From the NCBI GenBank assembly GCA_946965045.2, contig OX337234.1, forward strand, positions 62,001 through 126,000: a stretch of DNA of 64,000 nt, read 5' to 3'. The notes under the pieces are model-generated. The model saw nothing but the letters and a program-made list of their open reading frames with translations, ran no database searches and had not been told where the DNA came from. The translations under genes were made by a program, and so were the position numbers. The stretch is from Epithemia pelagica. Taxonomy: Eukaryota > Protista > Bacillariophyta. Below are positions 12,694 through 61,698 of this stretch, piece by piece. Each line of letters opens with the position of its first letter. The stretch's first letter is position 1.

Positions 12694-15600
12694 TCACCCC
12701 AAGTCGTTTTGACAGCAGGGCGTGGCGCCTCCACCCGCTTCGGCCAAACGAAGGAATGGATCCGTCATGGTCCCGGTACTTCCACTTTCGGTCCGGGAGG
12801 ACACGCCGGATATTTGATCGTCCGGATCACCACCATCATGTCCCACCATGCCATCTTCACATGACGAAGCTGTCAAGGCACCCGTTTCATCGGGATATTC
12901 GATATGGACGGCATAGAACCGATCACTGGTACAACTACTAATCGTACCATCGTGGTCCGCCTGTGCCTGTTGTTGTTGATGGTGTTCTTGCTGCAACTTG
13001 CGTCGTTTGATAAAATCTTGCAAATCCAACTGTTCGGGATGTTGCGGATGTCGTGGAGGAGGTGGATGATGACGATGATCCCAGTCATGCGCAGAATGAT
13101 GGGGAGGACCCAAGTCGTCGCTCGAACCAGCAGCCGCATGCGCTGGTTTGGCGTCCTGGTCGTCGTCCTCGCCATGATGTCGTCGTTGGGACGCTGGTTC
13201 TTTGCAACTCTCGTGTGGCGTGGGAAAGGGGTGAACCCTCGTAGGCGCACCGTAGTGCTGCTGCTTCGTGACAAGTGCGGGTGGAGAGGATCGTTCTCCA
13301 CCGTGATTGTAGTTCGATCGTGTCGATGATTTGGGTCGCAAGGTAAAGACTTCTTTGCAGTTAAAGACCAAATGGCCAGCCACCAGTCCCAAAATACTCG
13401 ACACAAAGCTGCAAGTATAAATGGACCAGAAAAGAAACAACAAGTGAGCCAAACCATCAATGCCATCGTCCATTGCAAACCCAGGGAGTATCAAGTTACT
13501 TACAGGAGCCCATTATAGGTCATAATGACCAACATGAGTAGATACCCCATGATTAATTGAATGGCATAGAGGGAGGCCACAATGGCCACCCGAAGTCCCG
13601 GACGATAGGGTGGGGGACGCGTTCCAAAGGGGGTCCGGGTTGTCGTGGCAGCCGCGGCCGCCGCGGCGGCCATGGCACGGACGGTATGTCGTCGGGCTTG
13701 CAAAATCCATTCCAAGCCGGCACCCAAGGCAAAGGTGGCCAAACAGGCGACACTAAACTTGAAGCGATTGGTCAAAATCCATTGCGGAAATAGAAAAATG
13801 ACACAGGTCGATCGCATCCAGGCAAAGCCAGCCATGTACATGGAGGTACCACCAAAACAAAACTTGTTGTCATCCGCCTCTTCATTCTCCAAAATCCACG
13901 CATTATCTGCGTCGTCTGGTTCTCCTCCATCGCTCGTCGTCGAGGAATCTTGAATGTGCAACGAAGGTTGCTGCTGCTGCTGCAAGTCATAGGCGGGCAC
14001 GGTTGCACTCGTTTTGGCCCATTTGCCCATGCATTCGGGATTGTTGACCAAGCCATCTTGACAGGGCTCGACGGCGGCGGCCACGTCATGACCGGATTGG
14101 ACATAAATGTGCGGGTCCATACAATACAAGGAATAACCCTGTTTGAGATAGGACCGTCGCTGTCGATAATGGGGAATATCCAAACAGGACATCCAACAAA
14201 AGAAATTGGTTTCATTGTTACACGCCTGGCCATTCAAGACTTGCATTAGGCGACGACGACCATGCGCGTGGTGCGCACGGGTATCCGTCGTAAGTGAGGA
14301 ATCGTCCTCCTCTTCCAGAATCAAGGACTCGAATGGTTCCGTTTCCCATTCGACGGCACGACTTCCACATCCCAACGAAACAAAGTCATCCCTCTTGTGT
14401 TCGTCGTCGTCCAGTACTAATTGCGCTGCCGAGGATGGTGTGTTCGTGGTCAAGGGCGTGGCATGGAGTGCCATTTGTTCTCGCAATTGGGCATAGGTTC
14501 GTTCCTCGGGATGCTCTTGTACAATGGCGTGATCCGGAACCATGGTCACTATATAGAGTATAACATAATAGAATGAGATGGAACCCAAGAGAATCCAGAA
14601 AACAACAACAACAACAAAAAGCAGCGAGACATTCCGAAAAAAAAACACAAGTCAACTCAACACGAACGCAGCGCGACAACAAGAGTCCATCGAGATGCGC
14701 CAGACGGTTGCCCCATCCACCCTCCAAGAGTACAAAATACACACGCTCACACACTCCATCCACACAACACTGGCAGACGCACAAAAACGTTCACACAAGG
14801 TGTGGTATAGAATAATACGTACTCATGCCATACCAGGTTCGCACTTGACCGGGTTGCAATCGCACCGCATGACGTGCCGCTTTCAACCACGACGACGACG
14901 ACAATGATGAAGCATCATTCTGATGATGAGAATGATCTTGCTCTGGTTGTTCCAAGGATGGTAGATGCAACCATTCTTGCGCGCCCAGACCCATGGCCAA
15001 GACAATGGAATTGGGTGGAAATCGGACGGGTCGTGCTTCTTCTTCTTCTTCTGGTTGAGAGATTGTACCATTTTGGGAGCGCATGGAAATCCAAAAGGAG
15101 GGTGTCGTGTCGTCGTGACCCTCTGTATCGTTGCTACTACAAATGCGGGCCGGAACAAAGGTCAAGAACAAACCAGCATCGACATGCCAATCCAAGGTCC
15201 AGGGAGGAGAAGAAGAAGAAGAAGAATATTGGGAGTCCTGGAATGTGCCTGTTGTTGTGGTGGTTGTTTGGAAACCACTGGTACCAGGAGTGGTCGTAGT
15301 ATTCCTCCTCGGCCCAGGACTCCTTCTTCTTTTGGGAGTTGTTGTTGGTGGTGCATCTTGTTGTGGTTGTTGCGGTGCGTCTTGTTCCTGTTGATGTGCT
15401 TGTGATTTGAGGGATGGCGATTCGTACAGGTGAAAATGTTCCAAATGCAGCGCCGCTTCTTGAATCGACGACAGGGTCGCATACCCTCCGCCATGTCCAT
15501 GTTTTAACACCCACGACGGGTCGTTTGGTGCTTGTCGTTGTTGTGCTTGTCGTGATTGTGATTCTTGTTGTTGTGGTAAAATCCAGTGTTGATCCATGGC

Positions 15601-16466
15601 TTGGACAAAGGTTTGAGTGACCCAGGCCACATCGTCGCGCAAGGCTTCCATGGCCTCGAGTGTCACAGCATCACAAGCCTGTTGGATTCGATTGGGTTTG
15701 TCCTCGTCGTCTTGTGGTTTGGAAAAAGACGACGACGACTGTGTCAAGGGCAAGGGTTGATTCGTTCCCGCCGTGGCAATGCCCACTGTCGTACGTCGGG
15801 TGCGACCATCCGGCAAGACCACGTGATCCACCACGGCACCACCAGCACCATCATTGTGGTTGTGGTTGGACGAGGACGAGTGTCTTGCTCCATTGGCCGA
15901 TTGTTCTTGTTCTTGTCGTTTCAAGCCCTGCCGACACTGACACAATCCATTCAAGGCTGTCCTGCGATGCTGGGCATAGGAATCAGCATTGCCATTCTGT
16001 GCTTGTGGCATGGCAATGGCCACCAAGCCCGTCGTGGACAAGGCTTCGTGCAGGGTCTTCCACACTGCCTCATCCTCTTGCTCTTGTTGTGGTTGTGCTG
16101 GTGCTTGGTGGTTTCTCCCCCGTTGTGGCAATGGCTGTGCCAACCGTGTCAAATCCTCCATGGCAATGGTGGGAACGGTATAATACTGAAACTCATGATT
16201 CTCATTGTCGTTGTCGTGAGGTGGTTGTGGTGGTTGCAAATTGTGCAACGGCACACGGCTGTTGCTGGAGGCAGCCTGTACCGCAAGGGGCAATGGTACG
16301 GCTGTCAGGTTCCACAAGAGGGCCGCCCAAACAAGGAGAATCGACCCCAAAAAGTTGTTGCTGGTGCTGTGAACATGAGCCATGTTTCGTTGGGAACGGG
16401 TCCTCCTCCTGGTTCGCAAAACAGTGTGGAGAAGAAGAAGTTCTTGTCGTGGTTGTGGTGGCCTGG

Positions 16467-16501
<35 letters not shown>

Positions 16502-18250: not shown

Positions 18251-20219
18251 TTAAATCCAATCGCCTTGTTGTAGTTTTTGGGGCAAGTAGGTTTCGGTAA
18301 TGTATTGAAAGCCAAACGAGCTCAAGGCTTGGATTTCCGCCTTTTTCTTGGTCTTGATCTAGAAAAGAGTATAGTAGTAGCACAAGGAGAAAATACAATC
18401 CAATCCAATCCGATCCAACGAGACAAGCAACACACGTGAGAGAGAATCCTCCAAGACACACATACACACAGCTATGTATAGAAACGTACCATGAGTTCCA
18501 GTTCGGGAATCCATTCGGGATGATTCGTCTTGATAAAGTCTTCGTTGATCAATTCCTTGCCCGTTTTTAAATCGTGTTCCGTCATGTCCAATTGACATTG
18601 GTCCGGCAATTGATACTTGCGCAAATCGGTCGGCCTTAGGCCCAACCAATAAATGTCGGGCGTGGTCAAACTGGCACTGTCATACGACATGTTTTTACTT
18701 CCCGACATGTAGACGGACAAAATTTTGAGTCCGTACGGATCACTGTCCACCAAGCCCAATACCGGAATTTGCAACGTGGCCTTGAGTCGACTCAAAAACA
18801 AGCGCGTCGCCACATCGGGTTGACCCTTGGCGGTAATCAAAATACAGGGATAGCGCAAATAGAAGCGATCTTCGGCCAAGCGCAAATAGGCCGCTTCCTT
18901 TTCCACGAGCAAAATAAATTCGGCCGCCGGGGTCTCGGCATTGGCCGGACTGACTATGTCTTGCACCCGATCGACAAAGGGCGGAATGGCCTTGCCGGAC
19001 ACGCCCATTTTGGTACAATCCAAGACATCGCCATCTTCGGTAAAGGACAGGCAGCCCACGACCAAGCCCTTGTCGGATGCCACCACGTGCAAATTGCTCC
19101 GCGTACAATTCAATAGAGTGGCGACATCGTCCAAAATGGGATCCGATTCCGATTGATCCCGAAACAATTTGACATCGGTATAAAACAAATCGCGTTTGGT
19201 AATGTGAATGCCCTTTTGGAGACTGTAGAATATATATATAGAGAGAATAGAATAGAGGCACCAAGCAATCATAGAGGAAACACGCACACAAAAGACAACC
19301 AACCAACAAAACAGAGTCAGTCTTCCAAAGCACAGACACATACGGATACACACGCACATTCACTCCAACCGTCACCGCACTGGGAATGGCCCACACTCTT
19401 GACCAACCATCTAAAAAATCTCTCCCATTCTCGTTCTTTCTCCTCCACAGACACAACCACAAACACTAGAGTATATACGTACACGGCTTGGACCAATTCC
19501 AAGACACGGAGCGTCAAGGCGGTTTTGCGACATTCCTTGACATTGGTAAATTGTCGACGAATGCGTTTGGATCCCAACACAATGCGATCCCATTCGGCCA
19601 CATAGACTTGATTGGACGCGGCTCGACTGGGAATTTCCAACACCAAGTTGGTATTGGAATCATTGTTGGTGTTGTCGCCCTTTAACAATTGCTGCACGAG
19701 ATTAATCGCCACGGCATGCAAGCCCTCCAAGACTTGATCGGCTGACAATTCCGATACGGCCACAATCGATGACGAATTGGCAGCAGTCGTCAAAGCAGAA
19801 GACGACACAGTGGCCTCTGGTTCGGCAGTGGCATTGTCTGGTGGAGGTACCTTGGCAGTGGATGGTGGTGGTGCCTTTTTCGTGTTCGTTTTGTTCTTGT
19901 TGGTTTGACGCATGGTTTGTTTCAGTTTGCGACATTTGGACAAGACACGATCCACGTCGGAAGCAATCGAAGGGACAGGTCGACGGCGACTGTTGGTCTT
20001 GGTTGGTTGGTTGCTGTTGCTAGTAGTAGTGGCGGTGGAACGACGGGGACGTCGAATCATTCTCGTAGTAGTAGCAGGATTGTTGTTGTTGTCGTCGTCC
20101 TGGGTCGTTGTGGTTGCGGCTGCCAGTGAGTTGCGTTTGCGAGGAGACGAGGCTCGAGGTTTTCCATCCTCCTCTTCCATGTTGTCGTCGTTGTTATAGT
20201 TGTCGTCCGTGGTTGGCAT
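18251..20219 (-). CDS. SPO11-3: DNA topoisomerase VI subunit A / SPO11-3
   Basis: Exons 20219-19483, 19222-18490, 18358-18251 with GT-AG introns 19223-19482 and 18359-18489. [16 protein letters not shown] (catalytic Tyr), Toprim VEKEA and [16 protein letters not shown]-terminus [14 protein letters not shown]...GDWI. These match the plant SPO11-3/TOP6A type. Confidence 0.93.
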
Positions 20220-24600: not shown

Positions 24601-24722
24601 ATATGCGTCAAGACTCCCGATGCGGAAGACCAATGCGCAAGACGAAACGTCAAACGTGGCTTTAGCACCGGTAACTTCTGACCCAAAAGGGTCTTCTTCA
24701 CTGCATTCATTGCATGTACCAT
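21691..24722 (-). pseudogene. Pentatricopeptide-repeat (PPR) protein gene with one premature stop and two frameshifts
   Basis: Three consecutive ORFs carry PPR motifs (PDRILLTTLIRAYGQ, PTAHTYSSLVWAYAK, PDVVTYNSLITAWSR, PNVRTYNAVIWALGK). TAA at 23279-23277 is followed by in-frame VAIKVFDEL; frame changes near 23240 and near 22770. No plausible introns at these junctions. Confidence 0.75.
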
Positions 24723-37652: not shown

Positions 37653-40600
37653 ATGCGAATGCCACTGCAACAACCGCCGTTCGAGCCAGAGTCGGCCGGG
37701 AGGAGGAGCAGCATGACTCGAAGAACCACCAAGCGAACTCGAAGCGAACCACCAGCACCACGAGAAGGAGGAATTCCGGGTTCACCATCCACAACAACAT
37801 CTTTCACAAGAACAACCACCACCACCACCACAAGATGCGTTCCTACCAGGCCAACAACAACACGTTCTTCTTCTGCTTCTTCTTTTGCTTCGTTTCGGGC
37901 CCGTAGGAGTAGTACGACGAGTCTGGATAGACGACCCTGGAGAATTCTTCGAACCAGGCATTTGTTGTGGTATTATTGGTGGTGGTTGGTGGGAGGATGC
38001 CGTTTGTGGTTGGCTACCAGTGTCAGTGCGGCTTCTACGGTGGACGGAGTCTATGAGGTACCCACCTTTTCCCTTTCCGAATTGCGTCAATTGGGAGAAT
38101 CGTCCTTGTCGGAGAAGAAGAAGAATACGCCAGTCGCCCAACGATTGCACCATGTCTTGACCACCACGGGTCTCTTGTCCATTGCCTTGGAGGACCACGA
38201 CACTCTGCAATCGTCCACTGGCGTATGGCAAGACTTGTGTGCCTGTCGCCACGCCTTGGAGGACCTGGCCGCGGCGCAGCAATCACAACCACCACCCGAC
38301 CACACTACAAATGGCGGCGTGATGCACGGACGCTTGTCGGATGGTGTGACATGGCGTACCACGCTTGCTACAGCTACCGTAGGATCCCAATCGCCCTTGC
38401 CCCTGATTCCCTCGTGGATGGAATGGGACGAAGCTCCTCACAACACGAATGGTCCTGCTTCTTCTTTGTGCCAGGGCCCCGCCCTGGTGGCTGGATTGGA
38501 AGCCGTGCGCGATTCTGTATCCGTGGCTACCCAAGCCTTTGTCACGGCGTGGGATGCCCTGGTTTTGGAGCAACAACACCAGCAATCGTCCCCAACCACC
38601 CGTATTTCGTGGTTGCACGATGCCACTCACACCTCCTATTCCTCCTTGGCCTCGATTCAAGAGGCGGCGGTCCATTTGGAACATTTTCATGTCTATCACA
38701 AGCCGCCATTGGGAACCAACAACAATCAAGAACCAGAAACTACCCAATCTATTACAGGAAACGCTGCATCGTCCCGCACCCGCCACAACCCGCCACGTCC
38801 AGCCTCCTTGCCATGGCATACCGATGCCGGCTTGTTTCTCAGTTTTGTGCCCGGACACACCTGTCAGGAAGAAGAAGAAGAATCGGACCAGAACCAAGCA
38901 TCCTCGAGTGATGCCTTGTGGATTCACCATCCCGTCACGGGGCAAGCCCAACCCGCCCACTTTCGCCCTCATACCATTGGCATCATGTTGGGCGTGGGCG
39001 CCCAAGAATGGTTGTCCCTGTCCTCCTCATCCTCCTCATCGTTCCACGACGCCTACAACTACCGGGCCACGAAACATGCCGTGGTAATGGAACCCGGACA
39101 AGTACGAGCGTGGTATGGCATGAGTACGTACTTTTCTTTTGTGTGTGTGTGTGAGGAAACTGTTTGTGGAGTCTCACAAGTAAGAACCTTGCTTTGTCTT
39201 TTATATATGTGTGTATTGTCCCTCTGGTGTTGGTGCTCCTTTCGAATTCCAACAACTACAGTGACCATGGTTCCTGATACGGCTGTGGTGCAACGACATC
39301 CCGAGCGAACCTTTGCGCAAATGAAACAACAATTGTCGTTCGTGTCCTCGTCCTCGTCTTTGCAACCAAGTGACGATACGAGCATGGTGATTGGATGTGG
39401 ATCCGCCGTGTCTACTCTAACACCGGACGACGATGATTCCTCCTTGGCCCCTACTGCCGATCATGACACAACGACAAACCATCGGTTGCGCCGTCGTCGA
39501 TTGCTCCAAGTGCAAACGGCCCAAGCCTGCAACAATGTGACCAACTTTTATTGTTGGATGTCCTGTTTGGACATTCCCAATGCCCGAGACCGCGACGTGT
39601 ACCTGGCCCAAGGCTATCACTTGTATTGCATGGATCCCCACTTGTACGACCGCCATGCCTCGATTGAAGAAGCGGTGCAACCCTGTCAGGGAGGATCCAT
39701 TCTCAATCCCAGTTGCGTCGGCAAGTGGACCAATAATGATCCCAATTATCAAGTGTGGGCCTATGACTTGCAATCACAACAACATGGGCAAGAGCATTCT
39801 CCACAACAAGCACAACTTTCTCAAAGTCATGGGCACAACCACCACGATGGTACGACCTACTCCATGAACGAAAAGAGTGGTCATTCTTCCCACAAAGGAG
39901 GAGGAAGCAAGACGAGTAACATGTTGGACGATGATGCCATACGGGACCAACCCGAAACGGCCGGGAAGGATGGTGACACCAGCAGCAGCAGTAGTAGCAT
40001 GGGGCATAATCATGGCAATCATGGGGGTATGGACTCTGCCTTTGCATCGTCGTCCACCTTTTGTGTCGGTGGTACATCCATGTATATGCAAGGCTTTTCC
40101 TGGCAAGAACCCGCTTGTGTCATTTTTCTCTTGCCACATTGGGTCTTGACCACACCCACCAAGTTTGCCATGGCCAGTATTGCCACCATTGTCTTGGGCT
40201 GCATCTTGGAATGGATCCTGTCGGAGCGACGCAAACTCATCAAGGAGTTGCCCCATGGACCCAATCGCATCGTCTGGGCGTCCGGCTTGTATGCCATTCA
40301 ATTGTTTCTCGGGTATATCCTCATGCTCATTGTCATGACCTACAATGCCATTCTGTACGTACAACTGTCCCATACCGCGACTCTCATGTGTGTGTGTGGT
40401 TACTCTACCAGACTGGAGTGAACAATCATGACTCACCAAAACTGGATCACCATTCTTGTCGTCCTTGTTCAAACTACAGGTTTATTTGCAGTATTGGCGG
40501 ATTGTTGTTGGGCAATCTCCTCTTTAATCGTCCTCGCGATCCACTCTTGGCAACGCGATGGATGTATCCCAGTAGCAACGGCAGTGTGTTGGGCAGTATT

Positions 40601-41080
40601 GCGGCGGCCACGACACATCGCAAACACTTTTCCCGCGTCCATCATCATTCGTCCGATCCACGAACAGAACTGCGTCCGCATCATCATTACCTGTATCAGG
40701 CGCACGAGTATTACCACACGAGCACGACTACTGCCAATGACCACAAGTTGAACTCCTCCAAGACGGCCGATGAGAGCAGTGACGACGACCGGGACATGAC
40801 GGAAAAGAAAGTGGAGGATCCGGGACACTCGGGGTATTCCTACCAACCATCGTACGACAAGGAAATGGACGAAAAGGACGAGGAGTATCATCATCGATTG
40901 AATAGCATGAATCCAGCCGTCAATATTGAATTTTTGGGTGGGGGCCTGGCCGATGATCAAGTATCCGGCTTGACCCGAGCGGCCAGCAGTGCCTTGTTTA
41001 CCATTGATACCACGGGAGAGGTGTCGGAAGGGGGTGCGACACCCTGCTGCAACAATACCGCGTCCGATGACTTTTGTTGA
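37653..41080 (+). CDS. Copy B: oxygenase / Cys-rich / Ctr copper transporter fusion (~1054 aa)
   Basis: Exons 37653-39123, 39262-40354, 40480-41080; introns 39124-39261 and 40355-40479. WHTDAGLFLSFVP, ATKHAV, FYCWMSC, His-rich linker, GGTSMYMQGF, MLIVMTYN, GLLLG, ATPCC. Confidence 0.9.
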
Positions 41081-43525: not shown

Positions 43526-46500
43526 ATGTTGGTGGGAATCTCGTTCGTGTCGTCGTTGCAATGGTGGAGGAATGTGGTTCTACTATTCGTGGGAAGTTTG
43601 GCAGTGGTACATTCCTCTTCTTCTTCTTCTTCTTCTTCTTCTTTGTTGGTGGTTCCTCCTGTTGCTTCCTTGACCTTGGAGGAATTGAATCAAGTGGCGA
43701 CTCCTCATCCTCATCAGGACTGGAAGGAGGAGGATCCGGTCCACGCGAATGAGGAGGATGTAACGCAACGATTTGTGACTGCCCTGACCACAACGGGTCT
43801 GTTGGTGATTCCCCGAAGGACCAATCGTTCCATGGCCTTGCAGGGATTGTGTCAGTGTCAGGAACCGTATCGGCGCCACGAGAACAACACCAAAAAGAAA
43901 AAGAAGAGCAACAACCAGGAAGAGGAGGATTTTCCCTTGTCCTGGCCGCATCCTCACCGTCTCGTGTCCTCAATCGAGGAACCCACCAGAACGTGGCGGA
44001 GTACGATTGCCACGGCCACGACCGGTTCCTCCTTGCCCGGGGACTTGCCCGTGGAGGTGAGGGAAACCTGTGGAGCATCCCTGGTTCAGTCTCTCCAAGA
44101 GTTGCGCCATGATGTCTCGACAGTCACACAAGCCATGGTCCAAGCCCTCGATCGACTTGTGGAAAGGCATTATCACCAACAACAAGAACAAGAAGAAGAA
44201 TCGTCAGAGCGTCGGTCCAGCACCAAGAAGGAGGATTTCAAGCATCCATCTTTCAAGCCCAACCGGCCTCCCTTGCTGTGGAACGCACCTCCCAAGCAGA
44301 GCCAAGAGAACGGCAAGTCCCATGAGAAGGACTATTATACCACGATTACGGACATTCAAGAGTCGGCCGTTCATCTCGAACACTTTCATGTGTACGAAAC
44401 GGAATCAAACGATCCAGACAAGGAGGATGAACGAACGAGGACGACCACTACTACTGCCTTGCCCTGGCATGTCGATGCCGGCTTGTTGTTGACCTTTGTT
44501 CCGGCGCATGAGTGTGATGATGCATTGTCGTCATCTTCCTTTTGGTATTGGGATGCCGCCACCAATCGCCCTGTTCCGGCTCGGTTTCCCCCCGATTCGG
44601 TCGTGGTCATGTTGGGACTGGCCTTGCCAGAGTGGCTGGAACCTACGCTGCCCTGGCACGCCACGCGCCATGCCGTTTACATGGCACCCGGTCAACGACG
44701 GGCCTGGTATGGGAAAAGTACGTGTATCTAGTCAAGTGTGGCAGCTTGAGGGGAATGGCCCAATCTGACACTTGTGTGTTGTGCTGTATTTTCTGGTGTT
44801 TGCTGTTGTGGTGCTCCCACAGTGACGTTGATTCCAGACCATGCTCTGGTGCACCAGAATCCCAATCGTACGTTTGGAGATTTGAAGCGAGCAATGATGC
44901 TACAACAACAGACCAACGGTCATGCTCCATTGCCGCACGACGAAACGAGTGCTTCTTCTGTCGGTATGGGATGTGCCTCGCAGCCGTCGAGAAGTGTGCT
45001 GAATGATCTGGAAGCCCCACGCAATTCCACTGGAGACCGTAGCACGATGCACCACCACCAAGGTGTCATGGTGCCACAGTCCCAACAAGACGAGGAGGAG
45101 GATGCGACTCGTGCCAGTCGCCGTGCTCCACGACGACGACGACGACGTGTCTTGCAAGTTCATTCGGCCCGCGCCTGTGACAATGTTTCGAGTTTTTATT
45201 GTTGGATGTCTTGTTTGGACATTCCCAATGCCCAACACACGCCCGACTATCTCGAGGACGGATATTCGCTCTACTGTTTGGACCCCCAACTCTATGCCCA
45301 ATCCGGCAACAATTTGAGCCATGCCGTGGAACCCTGTCACGGAGGATCCGTCCTCAATCCAGCCTGCATGGGCATTTGGGCTCCCACGTCGGCCGCCACA
45401 CCGGGCTATGAACTGCCACATGCGGTGCAACACAATGATAGCACACTGGTGGCGTCGGATGCATTGCCATCACCTCCTCCGTTTCATCCGGAGCAGAAGC
45501 AGCAAGACTCGGCCTTTTTTTGCGCTGGCGGCATGTCCATGTACATGAAAGGATTTGCGTGGAGCGATCCCATTTGTGTCATTTATCTCTTTCCTTTTTG
45601 GATCTTGTCGAGTCGAGGACGATTGGTCGTGGCCTGTTTGGCCACGATACTGTTGGGCTGTATGTTGGAATGGATTCTGCAAGAACGACGCAAACTACTC
45701 CAGGAGCATCTGTCCGAGGGGGTTCCTCGTACCGCCTGGACATCTTGTTTGTATGCCATTCAATTGGCCATGGGTTATGCGATTATGCTCATTGTCATGA
45801 CGTACAATGGTACCTTGTACGTTTCCTCGAGACACATTTGCCGATTGTGGTTGCATGTCGCGTATCTCACCCTCTTGTCATTTTGGTGCAGATTCATTTG
45901 TTGCGTCTTGGGACTGGTTCTCGGCAATGTCTTGTTTGCCAAGAAGAAGCAGCAGCAGCGTGGTTCGCATTCGTGGTGTTGGAGCAGCCGTCGCAGCATT
46001 CAGTATGCCGCTTGGCGGCATGATCATCATCATCACAGGCTCCGCCATGACGACGAGGAGGAGGATGGATTCCAATTGACGCGGTATTATTCGGGGACAC
46101 CACCCCTCGTGTTGTCGCACCAACCAGTGGATCGGTCCCACCGTGTCTTGGTCACGTCCTTTCGAAACCCTGCGGATGACGACGAGGATGATGATGAGCT
46201 GCAACGCTATCACCATTTTCCACACCAGGGTCAGGAACCACCCAACCTTGCCATTCAGCAGCGAGAATTGAATGGCACTCCCAAACATGAAGAACAAGAA
46301 GAAGAAGACTCGCCGCGCACCAGCATTCTTCGCCATCGCGTACGGTTTGGATACGACACTCGTCGTATGATGACGGACGAGGAAGATGCCTGGAATATTG
46401 AATTCTTGGCGGGACACTTGGTGGGTGTGGACGATCAAATTTCGGGCATTTCGCGTGGCGCCAGTACCATGACGGGAACCGTGGATACCTCGCGAGACGA

Positions 46501-46627
46501 CGAAGAAGAAGAAGAAGAGCAAGAAGAAGCGGCTGCTGTGCCGACGACGCCTCATCGTGGTCGTGTCGGTTCCAACAAGACAACGAGCACGCCTGGCTCC
46601 TTGGCGGAGCAGGCCTTGTTTTGTTGA
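43526..46627 (+). CDS. Copy C: oxygenase / Cys-rich / Ctr copper transporter fusion (~973 aa)
   Basis: Exons 43526-44717, 44823-45816, 45892-46627; introns 44718-44822 and 45817-45891. WHVDAGLLLTFVP, ATRHAV, FYCWMSC, GGMSMYMKGF, MLIVMTYN, GLVLG. Ends ALFC, with no PCC. Confidence 0.9.
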
Positions 46628-47924: not shown

Positions 47925-50900
47925 ATGCAAGGCATTGTTGATTCCTCCTGCTGGTTGGTGCAGCACTGCAAGAGGTTTCTTGTCGGAAGGAATTCCTCCC
48001 CCTCATTGTTGTCCTCTTTTGGCAAGGGTGATCGATTCTTGGTTCTGCTCTTGCTGTTGATTGGAATAGTGGTTGAGAACCATCCTTGTCTTGCCACTGT
48101 TGTTGTCGCGGAGCAACCATCATGGTCCACAACCACAACCTCCAGGCTCTCTTCCACTACGAGCCAAAGTCCTAACCAAGGAGGTGCGAGAACCACCACA
48201 CCACCAGCCGCCATGGTTCCCACCACGGTTTCCTGGCACGAGTTGCAGCAATCCTCTTCCCACAACGACAATCCAGCATTCTGGAGGAAATTGTCCACGG
48301 CCTTGCAAACCACTGGCTTGGTGGCCGTCCAATTGGAGGATGAATTCCCCGATCGCTCTGCGGCTCTAAAGGGATTGTGCCAGTGTCGTCCGCAATTGGA
48401 GGAGCAATATTCCTCCTCCTCCTCCTCGACTCAATCCAATTCCATTCAATCCGTGGCCTTGATGGATGGATCGACACTGCGTACTACGGTGGCCACGGCC
48501 ACGGCTGGATCCGCGTCGCCCCTGCCCTTGACGCAAGACTTGGAATCGCCCTGTGGAACGGAGACGGTCCACGCCATGGAAGCCGTGCGCGATCAAGTCT
48601 CGGAGGTCACCACGGCCTTTGTCCAAGCCTTGGATCAATTGTTGTTGCGCCAAACAAACAACAACGATGGCAGCAACAGCCACCAAGGCGACCAACTCCC
48701 ATTGTTGCGGAATCTTCAGGACGGCACGTACCACACGGTATCTTCCATTCAAGAAGCAGCCCTGCATTTGGAACACTTTCACATTTATTCCAAACAAGAA
48801 GAAGAACAACAACAACAACAAGAAGAACGACAGCAAGAACAAGCCTCTGCTTTGGACTCTCCAAAAGCTCCTGCAAGAATGGATCCATCCAGCCATGAGG
48901 ACAATGCGGCGACTCCTCCCGATGGGCCCAGCAGCGTTCGTGACACCACCACCACGACCCGTTCTTCGTTTTCGTCTCCACAAACCTTGCCCTGGCATAC
49001 CGATGCCGGTTTGTTTTTGAGTTTTGTGCCAGCTCGTAATTGTGGGGACGACCACCATGACAACAATGACGACGAGGATGACTCGTTTTGGCTCTGGGAT
49101 GATACGCATGGTGGTGCTGCGAGACCGGTTCGGTTTCCTCCCCATTCCGTGATTGTCATGATGGGAGCCGGGGCACAAGACTGGTTGCAACATACAAACA
49201 TGGCACTGCACGCCACGCGACATGCCGTCCACCTGCAACCTGGACAGGTGCGAGCCTGGTATGGAATGAGTAAGTATCGTGTAATGGTTTACAGACCGAC
49301 TGGTTCGTGGCAACCACGGCGGTGGTTTCTGGAGATTGGTTTCTCACAGAATCCACTTGGACTGTTGTTCCTTTTAATGTACAGTGACCATGGTGCCCGA
49401 CAGTGCCATTGTGCAACACAATCCCGATCGAACCTTGGCCGACTTGAAACAACTCATGGCCGCCTCTTCCCCCCACCAAGGCCAACCACAAAAAGATACC
49501 CAACCGCAAGATCTGGTCTCGATTGGATGTGACCAGCAATACCTCAATCCTCAAGGTTCTTTGTTGCGGAGCGAGTCGTCCTCTGTGATTCTCCATGCCA
49601 GCAACTCGACTCGAGTGGTTCGACAAGAAGAAAAAGCAGCAGCCAGTCACCCGTATCTGCGAGAGAGTGTTGGTCGTCGTCGTACCATGATGCAAGTTCA
49701 AGGGGGTGGTCCCAGTGCCTGTGACAATGTCACGAGTTTCTTTTGCTGGATGTCCTGTCGAGACATTCCGGCTCTTCCACAACACGACGTGTTGAATGGA
49801 CAAGATCTTTCCTTGCAGTGCCTGGATCCGAACCGATACGACACCGAGGCGGGTGCAGAGTCCTTGTTGCTTCCGGCACTCAAGGCGTGTGATGGTGGAT
49901 GGAAGGGAAATCCGGATTGTCGTGTGCAATGGGTTCCCACACGGACACTCGAGGCGGCCCTGGCCCTACCTGCTACAGGAGCCTCGGGACGATTTTCGTC
50001 GTCGTCGTCATCCGCGGCTCGTCCTTTTTGTTCGGGAGGGACGGCCATGTACATGCATGGGTTCATGTGGATGGATGAAACCTGTGTCATTTTCTTGTTT
50101 CCCACCTGGGTCTTGTCCACTCCGGGACGATTTGCCTTGGCCTGTCTGATTACGATTGGATTGGGCATTGCATTGGAATGGGTCTTGCTCCAACGTCGTC
50201 ACTGGGTCAAGTACGAACAACGACACGCCAAGGCCGCGGCTGCGGCTATCGCCAATGGAGGATTGGGGACACCCTACCCGATTGCCAACCACCACAGTTG
50301 GTGGGGCGTTTCCACCGCCCTGCACATGGTCCAACTCACCATGGGATATTTCCTCATGTTGATTGTCATGACCTACAATATCCCATTGTACGTACAAACG
50401 AAACTGGAATCAAATCTCTGTATTTGTCAATGGACCTATACTCATATTCTGCTCTCTCTTTTTCTTGTTTGTTTAGGTTTATTTGTAGTATTTTGGGCTT
50501 GGTCCTTGGAAACCTCTTGTTTCATCGAAACAGTGGAACCAAGGGAACCGTCAAGCACAAAAGGCACAGCTACGACGACGACGACAATACTGGTTCGAAC
50601 AACAAGCGATCGATCTATTCCAGCAGCACTCGAATGGATCCTCTTCCTCAGTACTACTCCTCCACAGTCAATAGTCAAGGTGCTCCCGAATTGTACGATC
50701 CCCACGCCCATGCCCATGCCTCGGACCAGATGCGGGGACCATACACCAATGGAAGGGTAGTCGCCATGGAATCGACACATCCGGGGCGATGGAACAATAG
50801 CTTCTTGGTACCGACCCATCATCCGGGGGGAGCAAGAGGAGGAGGAAGCCCTCCTCGAGACCCACACGGTGGTTCGTCGTGTTGTGGTGGGGGTTCCGTC

Positions 50901-51398
50901 GTGCGTGTGGATCACGCGGATCCACCATCCTTTCGAACTACTACTAATACGCAAGAACCAGAAGAGGATGCGGCCATGCGCATGGTACAAGGTCGTCGAC
51001 GTGGACGACAAGTGTCCTTGGTGCCACCGGCCGCAACAGCACCCCAACCACAGTCAAATCTGGTGACGACCTACCAAGTTCGTGATTTGCTCGACTTTAT
51101 TGGTCACGATCCTCATTCCGATCGTGTCTCCAGCAGTACCACCTCGGCTTTTACACCCATTACGACGGCCACCAGTGCCGTTACCAGTAGTAGCAGTAGC
51201 AATAGCAGTACCAGTGGTGCCACGGTGCAGTCCACCACGGCGGCGTGGGGAAGCATGGTGGGCGATCGACGACATCGCCATCATCCGACATCCGCGTCCT
51301 TGTCACCAGGGCAAGCCACCGAAGACGATGACTATGCTGGGGAGGACGGAGACGAAGGCGATTGTGCAGGGGCAACACCCTGTTGCCGTGACATCTAA
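47925..51398 (+). CDS. Copy D: oxygenase / Cys-rich / Ctr copper transporter fusion (~1089 aa)
   Basis: Exons 47925-49269, 49385-50387, 50477-51398; introns 49270-49384 and 50388-50476. WHTDAGLFLSFVP, ATRHAV, FFCWMSC, GGTAMYMHGF, MLIVMTYN, GLVLG, ATPCC. Confidence 0.9.
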
Positions 51399-52323: not shown

Positions 52324-55300
52324 TTAGATGACACTTCGATTGCCCGGCTCATCGTCAAAGGATTCCTTTCCTTGCCCCGTAGCAAACTGCTGCATCATCA
52401 TGGCCACCACTTCTTGTCCCCGATCTTCCCATTCTTGTCGATTCTTCAAGGCATAATTCAAGTATTCGTCACTTGAGACACCAAAGACACCACACAATTT
52501 CAACTTCTTGGCCAAGGGAATGATGTAAAAGTCAAAAAAGCCCATTTCGCCCTTGTACCAGTTTTCAGAAGGATCTGTTTCAGCCCGACCATCCAAATAG
52601 GCCTGGTAACATTCGCGGAAAAAGTTTTCATTCCATTTGCGGTACACATACCAATGTTGCATGGTATGCGAGACATCGGAAGCTTGAATCAAGTGCTCAA
52701 TCACAATGGTCGCCTTACGGTTGACGGTATCGCGAGGATTCTCTTCTGTCAAGACTTCGGCAAAGGCCTTGTCCCATCGGGCATTGCGCAACACCTTGAG
52801 TTCCTTATCGGCAATGTCCGTGGCCAAGACGGCTTGTACGACAAGTTGACGGAATCGATCAAATTCGGCCTCGGTTGCATGAATGCAGCGGCGCAAGTCG
52901 CGGTACTGATCAGTCTGCAACAAATCCCAAGCCAAATCAATGGAGTTCTGTTCCGCCACACTCTTGTTTCGGTACATGGTGGCCAGCGTCACATTTTCCT
53001 TGACCAATGTGGTATTGGGAACTCCGGCTGGTTGATGGAAAACAAGTAAGAGGTGTAAGACAAGACCGCTCGTTCAAACGACATGGCACATTCCATTTGG
53101 TTCAATGGTACTTACTGTGATCGACATCATGAATCAAGGCCGAAAAGACCATGGCCAATTGTGTGAGAGGATCCGAAGTGATTCCGTACGTGTGATCGTG
53201 CAAGGTGGAGGCCAACTTGCGTTCCTTTTCGCCATCATCCGGAGAGTTGGAGTCTTCGGATTCACTGCTATCTTCGTAGTTGATATCAGACGGCGCGACA
53301 ATACGAGACAACAATTTGGTCACCGACATGGTCACATGACAGGCATGTTCAAAACTGTGAAAGTCATTTTTGCGGTACATCGAGGCAATGGTACTAATGT
53401 AGGCACGGAGTTGTCCAATCACAGTCTGACCCAAATCAACCTGTTCCGGGTCTTCTTGCAGTTTCACGGCATGGGCATCAAATTCGGGCAAGGTGATAAT
53501 TTCCTTGACTTCGTCCAAACACGTCTTGTTGGGATCTTGAGTCCAATGAGAAGGTGCCAGAGACGACGACGGTCCATGCTTGGAGGAGGCTGCGGCCGTG
53601 GCATCACGTCGAGCCACGACTTGTTTCAAGAGTTGGGTAAAGATTTCCACTTGCCAATTGATCAAACGATCTTCCTTGTTGTCCGCCATTTCGGCAAAAC
53701 CCCACATGTCCTTGTCTTCGGGATCATTCTTAGCCGCCGTGTCTTCCGATTCTAACCAATAGGTTTGCAAGGTTCCCTTGCCCTTGGCCAAGACGAGATC
53801 TTGACGTTCCTGGACCCAATGCTCCTTGCCACCCTCTCGCAACAAATTGGCCGTTTCCTTGGACATGTGGATTCGGTTCGGGACACCCGTAGCTTCAATG
53901 CGAGCAGTGGTATTCACCGTGTCACCAAACAATTGGAATCGCGCACGGTCTCCTCGCAGTACACCGGCCGTAACAGTTCCACTGTGCAATCCCACACGTA
54001 CACCCAAATCACCAGTATCCGGACCAAGGGAGAGTTCCAACTTTTTGACCAAATGCTTGACGGCCTTGACTGTGTCACACGCGAATCGGGCCATGATCAA
54101 GGCATGATCCTTGGTGGGTTCCGGCAAACCAGCAACGGCCACATAACAGTCACCAACTGTTTCGACCTTGAAGACGTTGCGTTTTTTGGCAAGGCGGTCC
54201 AGTTCGGAAAAGATAGTCTCCAACAAGACAAAGACTTGACTCGGTTCGCGCACCGAAGACCAGGCTGTAAAGCCAGAAATATCGGCAAACATGATGGTTG
54301 TTTCCAAAAACAAATCAGCAATGGGCTTGGTACCTGCGGCATCTTTGCCACCATCCAAAAAGCTCTTGATTTGACCCTTGCTGGTGCGGCCAAGGAGGTA
54401 TCCCTTGCTCTTCTTGCCACCATTCGCTGCATCTTCCCGTTCTTCTCCTCCTGGCAACAAACGGTCTCGAATGTTACTGGGGAACATGGAGGACACAAAG
54501 GCATTGGATTGAGCCGCGTTTTCCACCAATTTTCGATTACGAACTTGAACCATGATATCGTACAAGAGAAAGACAACAATCATCAAAAAGAAGGTACCAG
54601 CCATGATACCGGCAAAGATTTCGGGAGTGCGGGACACATACGTGTCTTCAAAGTCTTGCGTCGGGTAGACCGTCATGCTGTATATGCAATGTCCAGGTGT
54701 ATTCACCACATTGGGGTTGGTGTACAACTCGGAAAAGTCAGCATCAATACGGGTATCGTCGTATTTGGGATCGTGCAAATCTCCCACACCAATAAAGTAG
54801 GCTTCCGGACCTTCAATCAAATAGGTATTGGTTTGATTACAAGTGTTGCGGAGTACCACATGAAGACCTTCAATCTCGGCAGGCAACAAATCTCGTAGCG
54901 GAGCATCCCATGACAAGCACCCTTGCACCATGCCGACAATTTTGGAATCTTGCTTGCCCACCTCCTCGTAGACGGGGTAAGTGACACAGGCATGGGGATG
55001 GTCATCAGCACTTTGTCCAGGCAACAAGGAATGAATGACTTCATGTTCTTCACGTTCCAAAGCACCACGAGTCAGCTTTTTAAAGAGTCCATACAAGGTT
55101 TCGTTGCGCAAAATCTCGTGGGCCGCATAGACATCGTAATTGTCCTTGTTGGAGGCAAGATTGAAATTCACAGCTCGGTACGTCGGAAAGGGTGGCGTGC
55201 GATGAAGTTGCAAATAGAAAACATCCGATGTATTGTCCGGAACAGGTTGCCCAGCGACAAACTTTTTGACGTATGGCGTGTATTGTTCCGGTTTAAAGGT

Positions 55301-56097
55301 AAAACCCGGACTGAGACGATGACTTTCGGCGATAATTTCTTCGTATCGGGGGTTGATCCACTCAATATAGGCATCCAATTCATCGGGTTCCGCCTTTTTG
55401 GCGACACTGAGAATTTGCATGTTGGATTGGACCCGGACCCGGCGTCCGTATTCTTCAAAGTCGGGAGGAGCATAAAAGGGCATTTTGGCACCAGCCGCAA
55501 CCATGCCCGATGTTACCACAGCCGACAAGGTTTCAAAGGACAACCGTGTTGCACGCTGTTGTTCCACACCCGATGAAACCAATGTGGCTCCAAATTGATT
55601 AAACTGGAATGTATCACAAAGGAACAAAGAACTAGAGGTGAGACTCGATTGACCTAGGGCAAAAACTACCCATAGAAACACAGATTGAAGGTGGGGTAGC
55701 ACGATCACAGAGAATGCTCCATCATAGAAAAACGTACCGCGTTGTCAAAATCTTCTTCTTCGGCATCCTTGAGGAATCGGTAGGTAGTGGCAATCACAGT
55801 GACTGCCACGGCACAAATCAAAATCAAAACGACAACACGAAGAAACCGGATACGATTGGTATCGTGTCGACTCATTTGATTCACCACTCGGACTTCTTCT
55901 TGGACCTGACCATTGGTGGAAGATTCTTCATTGGACGATCCTCCTCGACTCAAACTGGCTGTATCGTAGTTTTCATCTTCATCCTTTGGCTGCTGGTTGG
56001 CATCAAACGAGGCTTCTTCCACAGGAGGACGATCCTCGTCTCTGTCGGGAGTTCCATGACTCATGCTCGCCTTTTTCGGACGAATGAGGGAACCCAT
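52324..56097 (-). CDS. Membrane class III nucleotidyl (guanylate-type) cyclase fused to a cyclic-nucleotide phosphodiesterase
   Basis: Exons 56097 (or 56064)-55738, 55603-53116, 53027-52324; introns 55604-55737 and 53028-53115. Two TM segments flank an extracellular domain. Cyclase: FADISGFT, KVETVGDCY, GLHSG, LFGDTVNTTARIE. PDE: FHSFEHACHV, spliced IHDVDHTGVPN, ATDI, ASDVSH. Confidence 0.93.
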
Positions 56098-57690: not shown

Positions 57691-57987
57691 CATGATATCA
57701 TGATGAATGGGGATGACGGTAATGACCCGTGTTTGGTCGTCGCTCCTTCGTTCCTGCACTTGGGGGTATGGGAGTAGATAGATGATATCATACTACTAAC
57801 TCTAGTCCAGTCCCATGGTGAACCATCTGTCGCTACGAAACAAAGAGGTCCATGATCATGATGAATGGGGATGATGGTGATGACCCGTGTTTGGTCGTCG
57901 CTCCTTCATTACACTGCACTTGGGGGTATAGGAGTAGATAATACCATACTACCTTCTAACTCTAGTCCAGTCCCATGGTGAACCATC
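57691..57987. repeat. Direct repeat, 2 x ~137 bp with 160-bp period
   Basis: catgat...gatgaatgggg...gacccgtgtttggtcgtcgctcctt...ctctagtccagtcccatggtgaaccatc at 57691-57827 and 57851-57987. Confidence 0.85.
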
Positions 57988-58540: not shown

Positions 58541-58572
<32 letters not shown>

Positions 58573-58850
58573 GCAATTGATTGTTGATTGTTCTCACTCT
58601 CTCGTATTGATTTTCTGGGTAAGAACAGTATTATTATTTGGACAACACCCAGCAACAGTCTCTCGTTTACGGACGGCACTCTCTCACACCATTGTTGCAT
58701 CGTTGTCGTCTGTTTGCTTCTGTTTGTTGGTTTGGATTCCTACTACTACTACTTCTTCTCGCAGATCTTGTGTGTGCTCTTTGGGAATTGACAAGAACAA
58801 CAAGCACTACCTAGAACAAGAACCAGAAAAAACAACACTAAAACAACACC

Positions 58851-61698
58851 ATGATGAAATCATTCCACTGGTTGTTCCTGGCCTTGGCGGCTGCGGTTGA
58901 GCACCATCACCACGAGAAGAATCGCATTCCCACCTTTTCCACAGAAGACGTTTTGGAGGGTCGGGTCGACACGGCCTTGGCCGAAATTTGGCAATCGACG
59001 GGCATTTTGGCTCTCTCCATCAAAGAAGAAGAAGAAGAAGGTCATTCGGGTGCTGCATCGTCGTTTTCCACAACCGACGCGCTCCAAGGCTTGTGTCGTT
59101 GCCAGTCCGCCTTGCAAGACTATCATCATGCGCGACAAGAACAACAACAACAACACGACCAGTCACCGCAAGTCGTGCAACATGCCCCGTTGCACGACGA
59201 TGCCACCACGTGGCGCACCACCTTGGCCACGGCCACAGTGGGTACCACCCCCTTGCCCTTGTGGTTACCAAAGAAGGAGGAGGAATCCTCACCGTGGCCC
59301 TGTTCGTCCGACACCTTTACCGCCCTGGAAGAATTGCGCGATCGCGTCAGTGGGGCCACGCAAGTTTTCCTTCACGCCTTGGATCGCTATCTGGCCCAGC
59401 ATCAACGATCATTCAACCACGACCACAAGGACCAGCAGCCGTATTTGATGCGCCATGCCTATGGAGGAGGCTATCACACCGTGGCCGAATTGCAAGCGGC
59501 GGGCAATCATTTGGAACATTTTCACATTTATGACAAGGCAGCATCATCATCATCCCACAAGGCAACATTAACAACACTAGGAGATTCTGGTTCGACACCA
59601 TTTCAAGAAGAAATAGAAGATGAACAAGACCACGAGGTGGATTCCAGTCGTCCTCCTACTTTGAACTGGCATACCGATGCGGGCTTGTTTTTGAGTTTTG
59701 TGCCGGCCGTGAATTGTCATGGTGATGAGAACGACGACTCGTCCAGGAGGATGGTCGATGATTCCTTTGTCTTGCCCAATGGACAACGAGCCATTTTTGA
59801 CAATCCCAATCATGTCGTGGTATTCATGCTGGGAGCCGGAGCCCAACATTGGTTGCAACTGCCGCAGCAGCACAACCAAAACGACATGAACAAGCCCTTG
59901 CTGCAAGCCACTCGTCATGCCGTCCACATGCCGGCCGGACAGGTGCGGGCCTGGTATGGAATGAGTACGTAGGAAAGACGAAACCAATGGCCATTTTGAA
60001 ATGAGTGTAGTTTGAAACTTGTTTGGTTCTGACACGCTTCTTGTTGTCGGTGTTACTTTTTTGTTTCGCAGTGACCTTGGTACCCGACATTGCCATTGTG
60101 CAAGAACATCCAGAACCCCAAACCTTTGGAGACATGAAACGTCGACTCAGTCAACACGCCGCCGCAACAGCACGACGACAAGAGACGAGCAGCTCCCTGT
60201 TGTCGTCCACCAGTCGCCGTCGTACCTCCAGGACCAAAGATACCAACCAGCATGACGACGATCACTTGTTTTCCTGGACGCCCACCACGCAACGGACCCT
60301 GTCGATTGGATGTGGAGCCTACACCCCTGTAAGCGAGTTGGAGGAGGAATCAGATGCCAGCATGGCAAATGGGAACGGCAACGACAAGGACCAACTGCTC
60401 TTTTTGGGTGGTCGTCGTCTGCGTGCCGACCATGTCCAAAGTCCCGATGCCTGTAACAATTCGACCAATTTCTTTTGTTGGATGTCGTGCATGGACATTC
60501 CCGATGCGGGTCGGATTGAAGAGCGCTTGAACGATGGTCAATCCTTGTATTGCATGGACCCGGCCATTTACGATGGCACGGCCCATCACAAGGTAAAGGC
60601 TGCCACGGAACCCTGTGCCCAAGGCCATGTGCACAATGCCAATTGTTTGGGCCAATGGGCTCCCACGGCGCACGGGGTCACACCCTACGACTTTCCCCAA
60701 TACGACCACCACCACAGTACGAATGACGATCCTGATCCTCATAATCATGATCCTGATGATACCAACAGTACCAATGTCGACTTTTGTTATGGTGGAACCT
60801 CCATGTACATGGATGGATTTCATTGGACCGATACAACCTGTGTCATTTACTTGTTTCCTGAATGGGTCTTGTCGACCCAAGGCAAATTGGCCGCCGCCGG
60901 AATTGGAACCGTCATGTTTGGAGCGGGTTTGGAATGGGTCATTTATTGGCGCCGATGGACCATGACCAGCTTGTCGTCGTCGAGTACCAGTCGACCCCTG
61001 CGCATGGTCACATCGGGTCTCTTTTATGGCTTGCAATTGTCCATGGGATACATGCTCATGCTCGTGATCATGACCTATAGTGGGGTCTTGTACGTATCAT
61101 CATGACTCCTGACACGTGTGGTGCTGCTGCTTGGTCATTGCCCTGTTGGACTCTCAAACATGTTCTTGTGTTTGGTGTTGTTTGTTTCCACAGATTCTTT
61201 TGTACCATCATGGGGTTGGTAATGGGACATGTCTTGTTCAATAGCAAAGATGCCGTCTTTGCCCACAAGAAAAAGCCGCACGAGCAAGAGAATGACATGA
61301 CACCATCAGAAGGAGAAGGCACCAAGAATGGTCGACCCGCACATGGAACTGGATTGGCCGCCACCATGTCCACGACACGGTCGGCGGGGAGTAGTCGATT
61401 TTTGCACTTGCATGCCTTTCAAAGTCAACGCATGAATGCTGCCACGGATGACGAAGAAGTGGGAACGGCCACCTTGGATACAACGAATCCATCCACCACC
61501 TGTCCTTGCAACGGGGATAGTAGTAGTGGTGGCGGTAGCAGTCACAATGACACGGCTGCCAATAACGATTTGATTGTCGATGACAGCTCGCTCTTGGCCG
61601 CAACAACGACGACCACAAAACCATCTCGTACACCGACGGCGGAAACAGACTGGAACATTCCCGAGGGTGCAACGCCCTGTTGTCAAAATGAATTGTAA
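58851..61698 (+). CDS. Copy E: oxygenase / Cys-rich / Ctr copper transporter fusion (~878 aa) with clear signal peptide
   Basis: MMKSFHWLFLALAAA signal. Exons 58851-59964, 60072-61089, 61194-61698; introns 59965-60071 and 61090-61193. WHTDAGLFLSFVP, ATRHAV, FFCWMSC, GGTSMYMDGF, MLVIMTYS, GLVMG, ATPCC. Confidence 0.9.

Follow-up and report, generated by a model that had tools for sequence, protein, structure and literature searches.

A diatom gene family that joins an IPNS-like domain to a Ctr-type copper channel

Five paralogous genes, A to E, in a 64,000-nucleotide stretch of the genome of the diatom Epithemia pelagica (assembly GCA_946965045.2, contig OX337234.1, positions 62,001 to 126,000 of the forward strand; this whole stretch is hereafter called the window) almost certainly each encode a single protein in which a double-stranded beta-helix (DSBH) domain and a Cys-rich module precede a Ctr-type copper channel. 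The DSBH domain is predicted to adopt the fold of oxygenases related to isopenicillin N synthase (IPNS), and it carries a putative metal-binding triad that is invariant among its relatives. We propose that the domain forms an active metal centre on the channel and processes complexed copper, a reading to which we give a probability of roughly 0.45. An earlier note on this DNA, made from its letters alone, had described the genes as fusions of an extracellular IPNS-like Fe(II)/2-oxoglutarate (2OG) oxygenase fold to a Ctr transporter. As set out below, the architecture stands and the enzymatic assignment has to be qualified.

Five paralogues with a common gene structure

The window reads as eukaryotic, with a GC content of about 50% and short GT-AG introns. 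We derived the splice sites by locating conserved peptides in each copy, using the listing of open reading frames (ORFs) and their translations, which resolved exactly five family members of three exons each. Copy A lies on the reverse strand at 12694..16383 (exons 16383-14823, 14548-13504 and 13408-12694) and encodes 1106 amino acids from the Met at 16383. Its intron 1 (14549..14822, 274 nt, phase 1) begins with GTACGT and its intron 2 (13409..13503, 95 nt, phase 2) with GTAAGT, both ending in AG. The remaining copies lie on the forward strand. Copy B (37713..41080; exons 37713-39123, 39262-40354 and 40480-41080; 1034 amino acids) is interrupted at 39124..39261 (138 nt, open in frame) and 40355..40479 (125 nt), and copy C (43526..46627; exons 43526-44717, 44823-45816 and 45892-46627; 973 amino acids) at 44718..44822 (105 nt) and 45817..45891 (75 nt). 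The introns of copy D (47925..51398; exons 47925-49269, 49385-50387 and 50477-51398; 1089 amino acids) fall at 49270..49384 (115 nt) and 50388..50476 (89 nt), and those of copy E (58851..61698; exons 58851-59964, 60072-61089 and 61194-61698; 878 amino acids) at 59965..60071 (107 nt) and 61090..61193 (104 nt). The lengths of 880-1200 amino acids given in the earlier note thus hold at the lower end, with 878-1106 derived here; about 1200 is reached by copy A only, and only if one of the in-frame Mets upstream of 16383 is used.

All ten introns start with GTACGT or GTAAGT, end with AG and occupy the same place and phase in every copy, which bears out the identical splicing claimed for the genes. 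Intron 1 (105-274 nt) is in phase 1 and stands immediately 3' of the WYG(M/K) codons, while intron 2 (75-125 nt) is in phase 2 and stands 3' of MTY(N/S)xx. Within intron 1 of copy D, DNA contigs from three sequencing runs join position 49275 to 49363, with ends that are not GT-AG; this joint is probably an allelic deletion or replacement within the intron.

The five proteins share 36-40% mutual identity and can be aligned end to end, with paralogue-to-paralogue matches at E values of 1e-44 or better, far beyond chance. Every motif that had been listed for the family, namely HLEHFHxY, WH(T/V)DAGL, A(T/A)(R/K)HAV, RxWYG, GG(T/M)(S/A)MYMxGF, ML(I/V)(I/V)M and GxxxG, is found in five of five copies, as is C(N/D)Nx(T/S)xFxCWMSC in the Cys-rich module. 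The terminal PCC, expected in most copies, occurs in four of them, namely A, B, D and E. It is absent from copy C, the most divergent paralogue, which also reads WYGK and has the longest branch in the tree. A tblastn search of the window with the five spliced proteins as queries returned no sixth copy and no pseudogene fragment.

That the two halves might belong to separate, adjoining oxygenase and Ctr genes, wrongly merged in the gene model, could be argued from the fact that the sequencing runs found for this genome are DNA, and from the way in which ORF-based callers split the copies at their introns (P0002, P0053). Several features of the genes speak against such an artefact, which we regard as hardly credible. 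As had been claimed, intron 1 interrupts the last core strand of the DSBH; exon 2 carries the domain on before the linker begins. In the model of a Seminavis homologue (P0009), exon 2 adds two strands and a helix ahead of the linker, and by analogy the beginning of exon 2 in copy E should supply the same elements. Unspliced copy B is a single open frame of 933 codons that runs through intron 1, also as claimed. The splice position is the same in all five copies and in many environmental ORFs; many of the latter end right past WYGMST/K, as read-through of intron 1 would have it, and the position is therefore common to diatoms. In relatives, a single transcript spans both parts: complete MMETSP transcript ORFs hold both halves (P0015, P0032, P0064 and P0164 (Corethron)), and many members of 640-800 amino acids lie on contigs of 2.1-2.7 kb, the size of a transcript.

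Channel, layout and N-terminal fold of the encoded proteins

The C-terminal half was identified as a Ctr permease in the earlier note, and this assignment is upheld by profile, structure-linked and motif evidence. The Ctr family profile PF04145 matches exon 2 of copy A with 54.0 bits and the ORF of copy B with 27.2 bits, above the cut-off of 25.3, and most homologues carry a precomputed PF04145 match. A full-length relative matches the sequence of crystallised Ctr1 (6m97) with an E value of 1.7e-6 over transmembrane (TM) segments TM1 and TM2-TM3. The pattern MxxxM-x12-GxxxG, described as a mark of all CTR proteins (PMC9502191), is exact in the five spliced proteins. Its spacing bridges intron 2, and because splicing restores it exactly, the model of intron 2 receives independent support. 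In copy E (+), the Met pair just ahead of TM1 lies in GGTSMYMDGF (60791..60820), where the Ctr Pfam match starts; the TM2 selectivity motif MxxxM is MLVIM (61058..61072), and the TM3 motif GxxxG is GLVMG (61213..61227), exactly 12 residues further on across the intron. The terminal PCC (61675..61683) is contained in a conserved (E)G(A/S)TPCC that closes most members. Among family members M518 and M520 of the MYM pair are invariant and PCC is nearly so. An AlphaFold2 (AF2) model of P0009 places three TM helices at 543-573, 578-604 and 607-636, in agreement with the hydropathy of the window copies. Judged by their sequences, the window proteins are members of the Ctr family. A second conserved motif, DDQ(I/V)SG(I/L/V)(S/T)R, lies in the tail of copies A, B and C, 20-60 residues ahead of TPCC, with a degenerate form in D; the cytosolic tails of copies A-D are otherwise rich in His, Asp and Glu and of low complexity.

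From the N-terminus, each protein consists of a signal peptide or anchor, a domain of about 350 residues, a disordered linker, the Cys-rich module, the Ctr channel and a long tail. The full-length model of P0009 shows the same order, with a confident DSBH at 30-352, a disordered linker at 355-425, a Cys-rich module at 430-500 modelled with moderate confidence, the TM helices and a disordered tail. The signal peptide of copy E comprises residues 1-16 (58851..58898, +), and the other copies have hydrophobic N-termini. The Cys-rich module, at 60452..60712 (+) in copy E, contains C-x7-CWMSC, six conserved Cys and a conserved N-x-S/T sequon; six or more Cys are conserved in the module across the family. 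A word-based search for the module in proteins without the DSBH gave the window's own protein only. The ectodomains of A-E hold just 0-2 MxM or MxxM pairs and no Met-rich region. From the signal peptides and anchors, the conserved Cys, the sequon and the known topology of Ctr proteins, we infer that everything before TM1 is extracytosolic.

The linker of copy E contains the tripeptide GCG (60308..60316, +), which has been called invariant. It reads GCA in copy C and GCD in copy D, is located about 30 residues before an RRxL sequence in a linker that otherwise shows little conservation, and has the counterpart (I/V)GC(G/S) in a sister clade that is described below. The RRL of copy E itself (60413..60421, +) is a candidate processing site of the diatom RXL type. 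Processing at RXL and RRL motifs has been documented for diatom secretory proteins (PMC5525289), the linker around the site is predicted to be disordered, and R402 and R404 of RRxL are invariant (alignment A2). The protein could accordingly be a polyprotein, from which an RXL-type protease frees a soluble oxygenase-like protein, with the fusion serving only co-expression or co-targeting. We consider this explanation quite unlikely. The sister clade keeps the DSBH and the Cys-rich module together on another anchor, so the modules look like one unit, although this argument is weak, since a basic site is found between the two there as well. Cleavage at RRxL would, moreover, still allow cooperation at the cell surface, and the polyprotein explanation and our proposal of an active centre on the channel are not exclusive.

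For the N-terminal domain, the AF2 model of copy E exon 1 (pLDDT 82.9, pTM 0.83) predicts an IPNS-type DSBH that spans residues ~24-371 (58920..59963, +), in line with the fold proposed earlier. In Foldseek searches, all 50 listed matches in the PDB and all 30 listed matches in Swiss-Prot are IPNS-family oxygenases, among them ethylene-forming enzyme, DAOCS, ACC oxidase, T6ODM and flavonol synthase. The best of these matches (E 3.6e-9, probability 1.00) covers residues ~26-371. VIA-align gives Z scores of 16-19 with 215-250 residues aligned at 3-4 Å, and the structural matches take in the N-terminal alpha/beta half of DIOX_N type as well as the DSBH core. A broader profile covering both the family and its sister clade (A3), searched against PDB sequences, found PDN2'H (9hdl) with an E value of 0.0045, aligning HtD with HLD and the distal His with PH; 9hdl is the top structural match too. 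The first search of this kind, with a profile from an alignment of 55 N-domains (A1), gave weak matches to the N-terminus of DAOCS only (E 0.4). A match of CDC23 to RAWYG with the same profile was rejected as chance. As modelled, the N-domain is a member of the IPNS-like structural superfamily, CATH 2.60.120.330, that lies beyond current Pfam family boundaries.

Conservation was counted over 197-206 non-redundant members with 24-48% identity, and four motifs are given here with their positions in copy E (+). Strand beta-I carries HLEHFHIY (59508..59531), in which E222, H223 and Y227 are invariant and H225 is kept in 205 of 206 members. The first two residues of the predicted facial triad, H274-x-D276, lie in WHTDAGL (59667..59687), aligned to HLD of PDN2'H, and are present in 206/206. 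The distal His, H356, belongs to ATRHAV (59907..59924) and is found in 200/200. In RAWYGM (59946..59963), which stands where RxS would be expected on the final strand of the DSBH, directly before intron 1, R366 and W368 are each conserved in 198/198. The residues that are invariant throughout these ~200 members are thus E222, H223, Y227, H274, D276, H356, R366, W368 and G370; the N-domain also holds four conserved Cys. R366 sits 10 residues past the distal His and 5 from the end of the structural alignment, which falls at 371 in the copy E model, 284 in IPNS and 263 in DAOCS, and by these ends we take it to be the equivalent of IPNS R279 and DAOCS R258. The likeness of this strand to RxS, noted earlier, is therefore partial: the Arg is invariant and correctly placed, whereas the position of the Ser is always Trp (W368).

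The DNA runs show many single-base differences, reflecting strain or haplotype variation. In copies C and D, the variants between sequenced strains or haplotypes comprise 19 synonymous and 14 non-synonymous changes, none of them at an invariant residue, a pattern that fits constraint on the genes.

That the Arg, the Tyr and the triad are completely invariant stands against the domain being a mere relic. A further possibility is that the old pocket is now a His-rich Cu(II)/Cu(I) site (H223, H225, H274, H356 and D276) that acts without catalysis as a copper antenna or sensor, feeding or gating the pore. Such a site would suit the two extra invariant His on the pocket strand, the Trp in place of the RxS Ser and the lack of a match to any 2OG Pfam model. 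With ectodomains that are devoid of Met-rich motifs, some other part must capture copper, and by the Irving-Williams series Cu is held tighter than Fe(II) at sites of this kind. We nevertheless regard an antenna or sensor as somewhat unlikely. R366 and Y227 are carboxylate binders in the IPNS family, and their invariance in ~200 members is hard to square with a bare metal site; pseudo-enzymes usually drop catalytic residues in some lineages, and none has been dropped here.

Relatives and genomic surroundings

A profile search of 1.84 billion representatives returned 945 clusters, defined at 50% identity, with E values of 1e-3 or lower, of which 748 reach 1e-10 or lower. The DSBH-Ctr architecture is thus that of a large protist family, common in diatoms and not special to E. 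pelagica. All named members are diatoms (Epithemia, Seminavis, Pseudo-nitzschia, Odontella, Cyclotella, Stephanocyclus and Corethron), and Thalassiosirales are represented. Clusters assigned to Oomycota are present in the ESM Atlas, and the nearest folds among AlphaFold DB clusters (E 1e-12 to 1e-15) are named 'Copper transporter', 'HMA domain-containing' and 'IPNS-like ... dioxygenase domain-containing'. A search for named relatives of the distant member P0185 gave P0185 alone, and the breadth beyond diatoms therefore rests on the Atlas taxa and the AlphaFold DB matches. Members appear in databases as 'hypothetical', 'mucin 13' or 'copper transporter', and some carry an automatic 'IPNS-like' label; names such as 'hypothetical protein' and 'mucin 13' mask the family in annotation.

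Distant members keep the Ctr channel, and the partners of the DSBH vary around it. P0182 (724 amino acids, from an ENA metagenome) combines the DSBH, the Cys-rich module and Ctr (PF04145) with a C-terminal HMA domain of metallochaperone type (PF00403, E 3.6e-8). The sister clade (P0194, P0172, P0183 and others; environmental eukaryotes; L001:3001-5265) is intronless and has a signal peptide and the same DSBH, with the motifs HLEHFHSY, HVDQG, ATPHAL and RVWHGRM, and no Ctr. Past the DSBH, a Cys module with the sequence CWHRCM is followed by a DOMON-like domain, a stretch rich in His and, at the C-terminus, a hydrophobic anchor. The DOMON-like assignment (Atlas score 0.93, no Pfam match) is a lead only. 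This combination also favours an outward orientation of the DSBH and Cys module. Because the Ctr, HMA and DOMON-like partners vary around the DSBH and the Cys module, the two appear to form a portable extracellular cassette that occurs on varied membrane anchors and has copper or redox parts as recurrent partners.

These partners also bear on whether the domain could be a classical Fe(II)/2OG hydroxylase in the endoplasmic reticulum or Golgi, modifying its own ectodomain or other secretory proteins and having no role in copper capture. Lumenal 2OG oxygenases are known (prolyl and lysyl hydroxylases), Fe(II), 2OG and ascorbate are present in these compartments, and the triad, Arg and Tyr are intact. 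However, the repeated Ctr and HMA partners point to copper, the fold matches, including the DIOX_N-like half, belong to the small-molecule IPNS/DAOCS/ACCO class, and the RxS Ser is replaced, which makes a lumenal hydroxylase very improbable.

Copies A-D fall into a single clade of the tree (99/96), and copy E groups with the Epithemia clementina protein P0004 (98/89), which suggests that the latter two are orthologous. Two other E. clementina members, P0003 and P0092, carry locus tags ACA910_003627 and ACA910_003631, four tags apart on a single contig of 2.9 Mb; the family is thus clustered in the genome of this species too. Given the A-D clade, the pairing of E with P0004 and the clustered E. 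clementina members, the five-copy cluster is partly old and partly lineage-specific.

No copper-related gene was found among the neighbouring genes; the large ORFs between the copies that have a Pfam match encode Spo11, PPR, EEP and cyclase/phosphodiesterase proteins. Between copies A and B lie a gene for Spo11/topoisomerase VI-A (PF21180, PF04406) and PPR-repeat genes, at 18472-20219 (-) and 21691-24722 (-). The region 28220-36160 (-) holds three consecutive long ORFs of 1428, 407 and 675 amino acids with strong positive GC skew, of which only the middle one has a Pfam match (EEP endonuclease, PF03372); it may be a non-LTR retroelement. The ORF between copies D and E (53102-55708, -; 868 amino acids) has an adenylate/guanylate cyclase catalytic domain (PF00211, E 3.6e-47) and, after it, the beginning of a PDEase_I domain, and is a cyclase-phosphodiesterase fusion outside the DSBH-Ctr family. 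Clusters of GTAC, resembling the copper-response element CuRE, are not enriched upstream of the five genes, with 0-3 occurrences per 800 bp against ~2.6 expected.

Proposed role and comparison with known systems

We propose that each gene gives rise to one membrane protein of the secretory pathway, built around a Ctr-type Cu(I) channel, in which a folded ectodomain of two parts, facing outwards or into a lumen, would take the place of the usual Met-rich N-terminus. Of these parts, the first would be the DSBH with a metal centre formed by H274, D276 and H356 (copy E numbering), retaining the putative carboxylate-binding residues R366 and Y227 and having H223, H225 and W368 as family-specific pocket residues; the second would be the Cys-rich module, presumably of disulfide type. 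If the channel trimerises like all Ctr proteins, three metal-centre domains would stand above the mouth of the pore. The DSBH domain would be an active metal site rather than a relic, binding a metal and a small carboxylate-bearing molecule, and complexed Cu(II) could be processed at the pore by redox chemistry or by oxidation of its ligand. Cu(I) might then pass from the Cys-rich module to the MYM pair and on to the MxxxM filter, to be received on the cytosolic side by the TPCC tail, where some relatives have a fused HMA domain. The link to copper is supported by the position of the DSBH on Ctr in diatoms and in oomycete-type clusters, and by the HMA domain that one member adds. A more specific version, in which the ectodomain is an active O2-dependent metallo-oxygenase that oxidises or destroys strong copper ligands and so releases the metal into the pore, is in our view unlikely.

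Several points weigh against an active centre at the pore. Neither of the Pfam 2OG models, PF03171 (which the earlier note had named for the domain) and PF14226, matches any window copy or the sister clade, and among the 55 members PF03171 gives a single weak match (1/55, E 0.02). The geometry of the modelled triad H274/D276/H356 is inferred from strand register only, and the same holds for the placement of H223 and H225 on a strand of which every other residue normally faces the co-substrate pocket. The RRxL between the halves is a potential cleavage site, and if it is used, the domain would not have to remain on the channel. The host membrane could be the plasma membrane or that of a vacuole-type compartment. 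The four sequencing runs that hold sequence of this genome are DNA, with even depth, intergenic cover and contigs of up to 509 kb, and no RNA was found among them. Free Fe(II) and 2OG, finally, are scarce outside the cell; because of this scarcity, the replaced RxS Ser and the two His gained by the pocket, it is doubtful that 2OG is turned over in the classical manner at the cell surface. Of the label 'Fe(II)/2OG oxygenase', the IPNS-type fold and the HxD..H thus remain, and the use of 2OG is in doubt. A re-tooled, non-canonical centre seems more likely than an Fe(II)/2OG hydroxylase of the classical kind.

In some regions of the ocean copper is a limiting or co-limiting factor for diatoms, and strong organic ligands hold more than 99% of the copper in seawater. 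The family may bear on how diatoms gain access to this tightly bound copper. Many of their Ctr channels have, on what is probably the outer face, a strictly conserved, predicted metal centre of enzyme type. If the centre is active, it would represent a new step in copper uptake and one of few instances in which an ion channel bears a catalytic domain, and the DSBH domain would be a defined target for mutagenesis. If it attacks copper ligands, it would constitute oxidative metal acquisition, distinct from the reductive FRE/CTR model, and the first enzyme-channel fusion in the Ctr family. If the domain merely binds metal, it would be a new solution to copper capture in place of Met motifs. The HMA and DOMON-like variants suggest a modular extracellular copper/redox toolkit in protists. 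The author of the earlier note knew of no characterised protein with this architecture; the literature searched holds no description of one either, and the DSBH-Ctr fusion is apparently undescribed. Current models of diatom copper uptake consist of a surface reductase and a plain CTR channel, and for CTR N-termini the review that sets them out describes Met/His motifs only (PMC9502191).

The closest functional analogy is offered by the yeast Fet3-Ftr1 and algal FOX1-FTR1 systems, in which an extracellular redox enzyme works together with a metal permease. The resemblance goes no further than analogy: those systems consist of two proteins, use a multicopper oxidase fold, handle iron, with the oxidase supplying Fe(III), and share no homology with the proteins described here. 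Page et al. in 2009 reportedly described Chlamydomonas CTR1 and CTR2 with large ectodomains bearing Cys-Met motifs, together with a soluble CTR3. These algal Ctr proteins resemble the window proteins in having a large, Cys-containing extracellular N-region, which can also be a separate soluble protein. CTR1 and CTR2 are not known to contain a DSBH or oxygenase-like domain.

Among diatoms, the CTR transporters of Thalassiosira oceanica (ToCTR) are likewise importers of the Ctr family; they are reported to carry Cu(I) and to be induced by low copper (Kong and Price 2018, via PMC9502191). With the Ctr1/SLC31A1 type in general (human CTR1, yeast Ctr1/Ctr3 and plant COPT; 6m97/6m98, PMC6437178), the window proteins share three TM helices, which are predicted here, the Met pair before TM1, MxxxM-x12-GxxxG and a cytosolic C-terminal Cys motif. 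The known Ctr N-termini, in contrast, are short, disordered and rich in Met and His, whereas the window proteins have a folded, enzyme-like domain of 350 amino acids, a Cys-rich module and a tail of 150-250 amino acids. The N-domain itself resembles the class of IPNS, DAOCS, ACC oxidase and plant DOXC enzymes (PF14226 and PF03171; nearest is PDN2'H of Neurospora, 9hdl) in whole-domain fold, in HxD..H, in the Arg 10 residues past the distal His and in the Tyr of beta-I. It differs from that class in its low identity (~10-15%), the lack of a Pfam match, the Trp in place of the RxS Ser, the additional invariant Glu, His and His on beta-I and the conserved, disulfide-type Cys, and in being probably secreted and joined to a channel.

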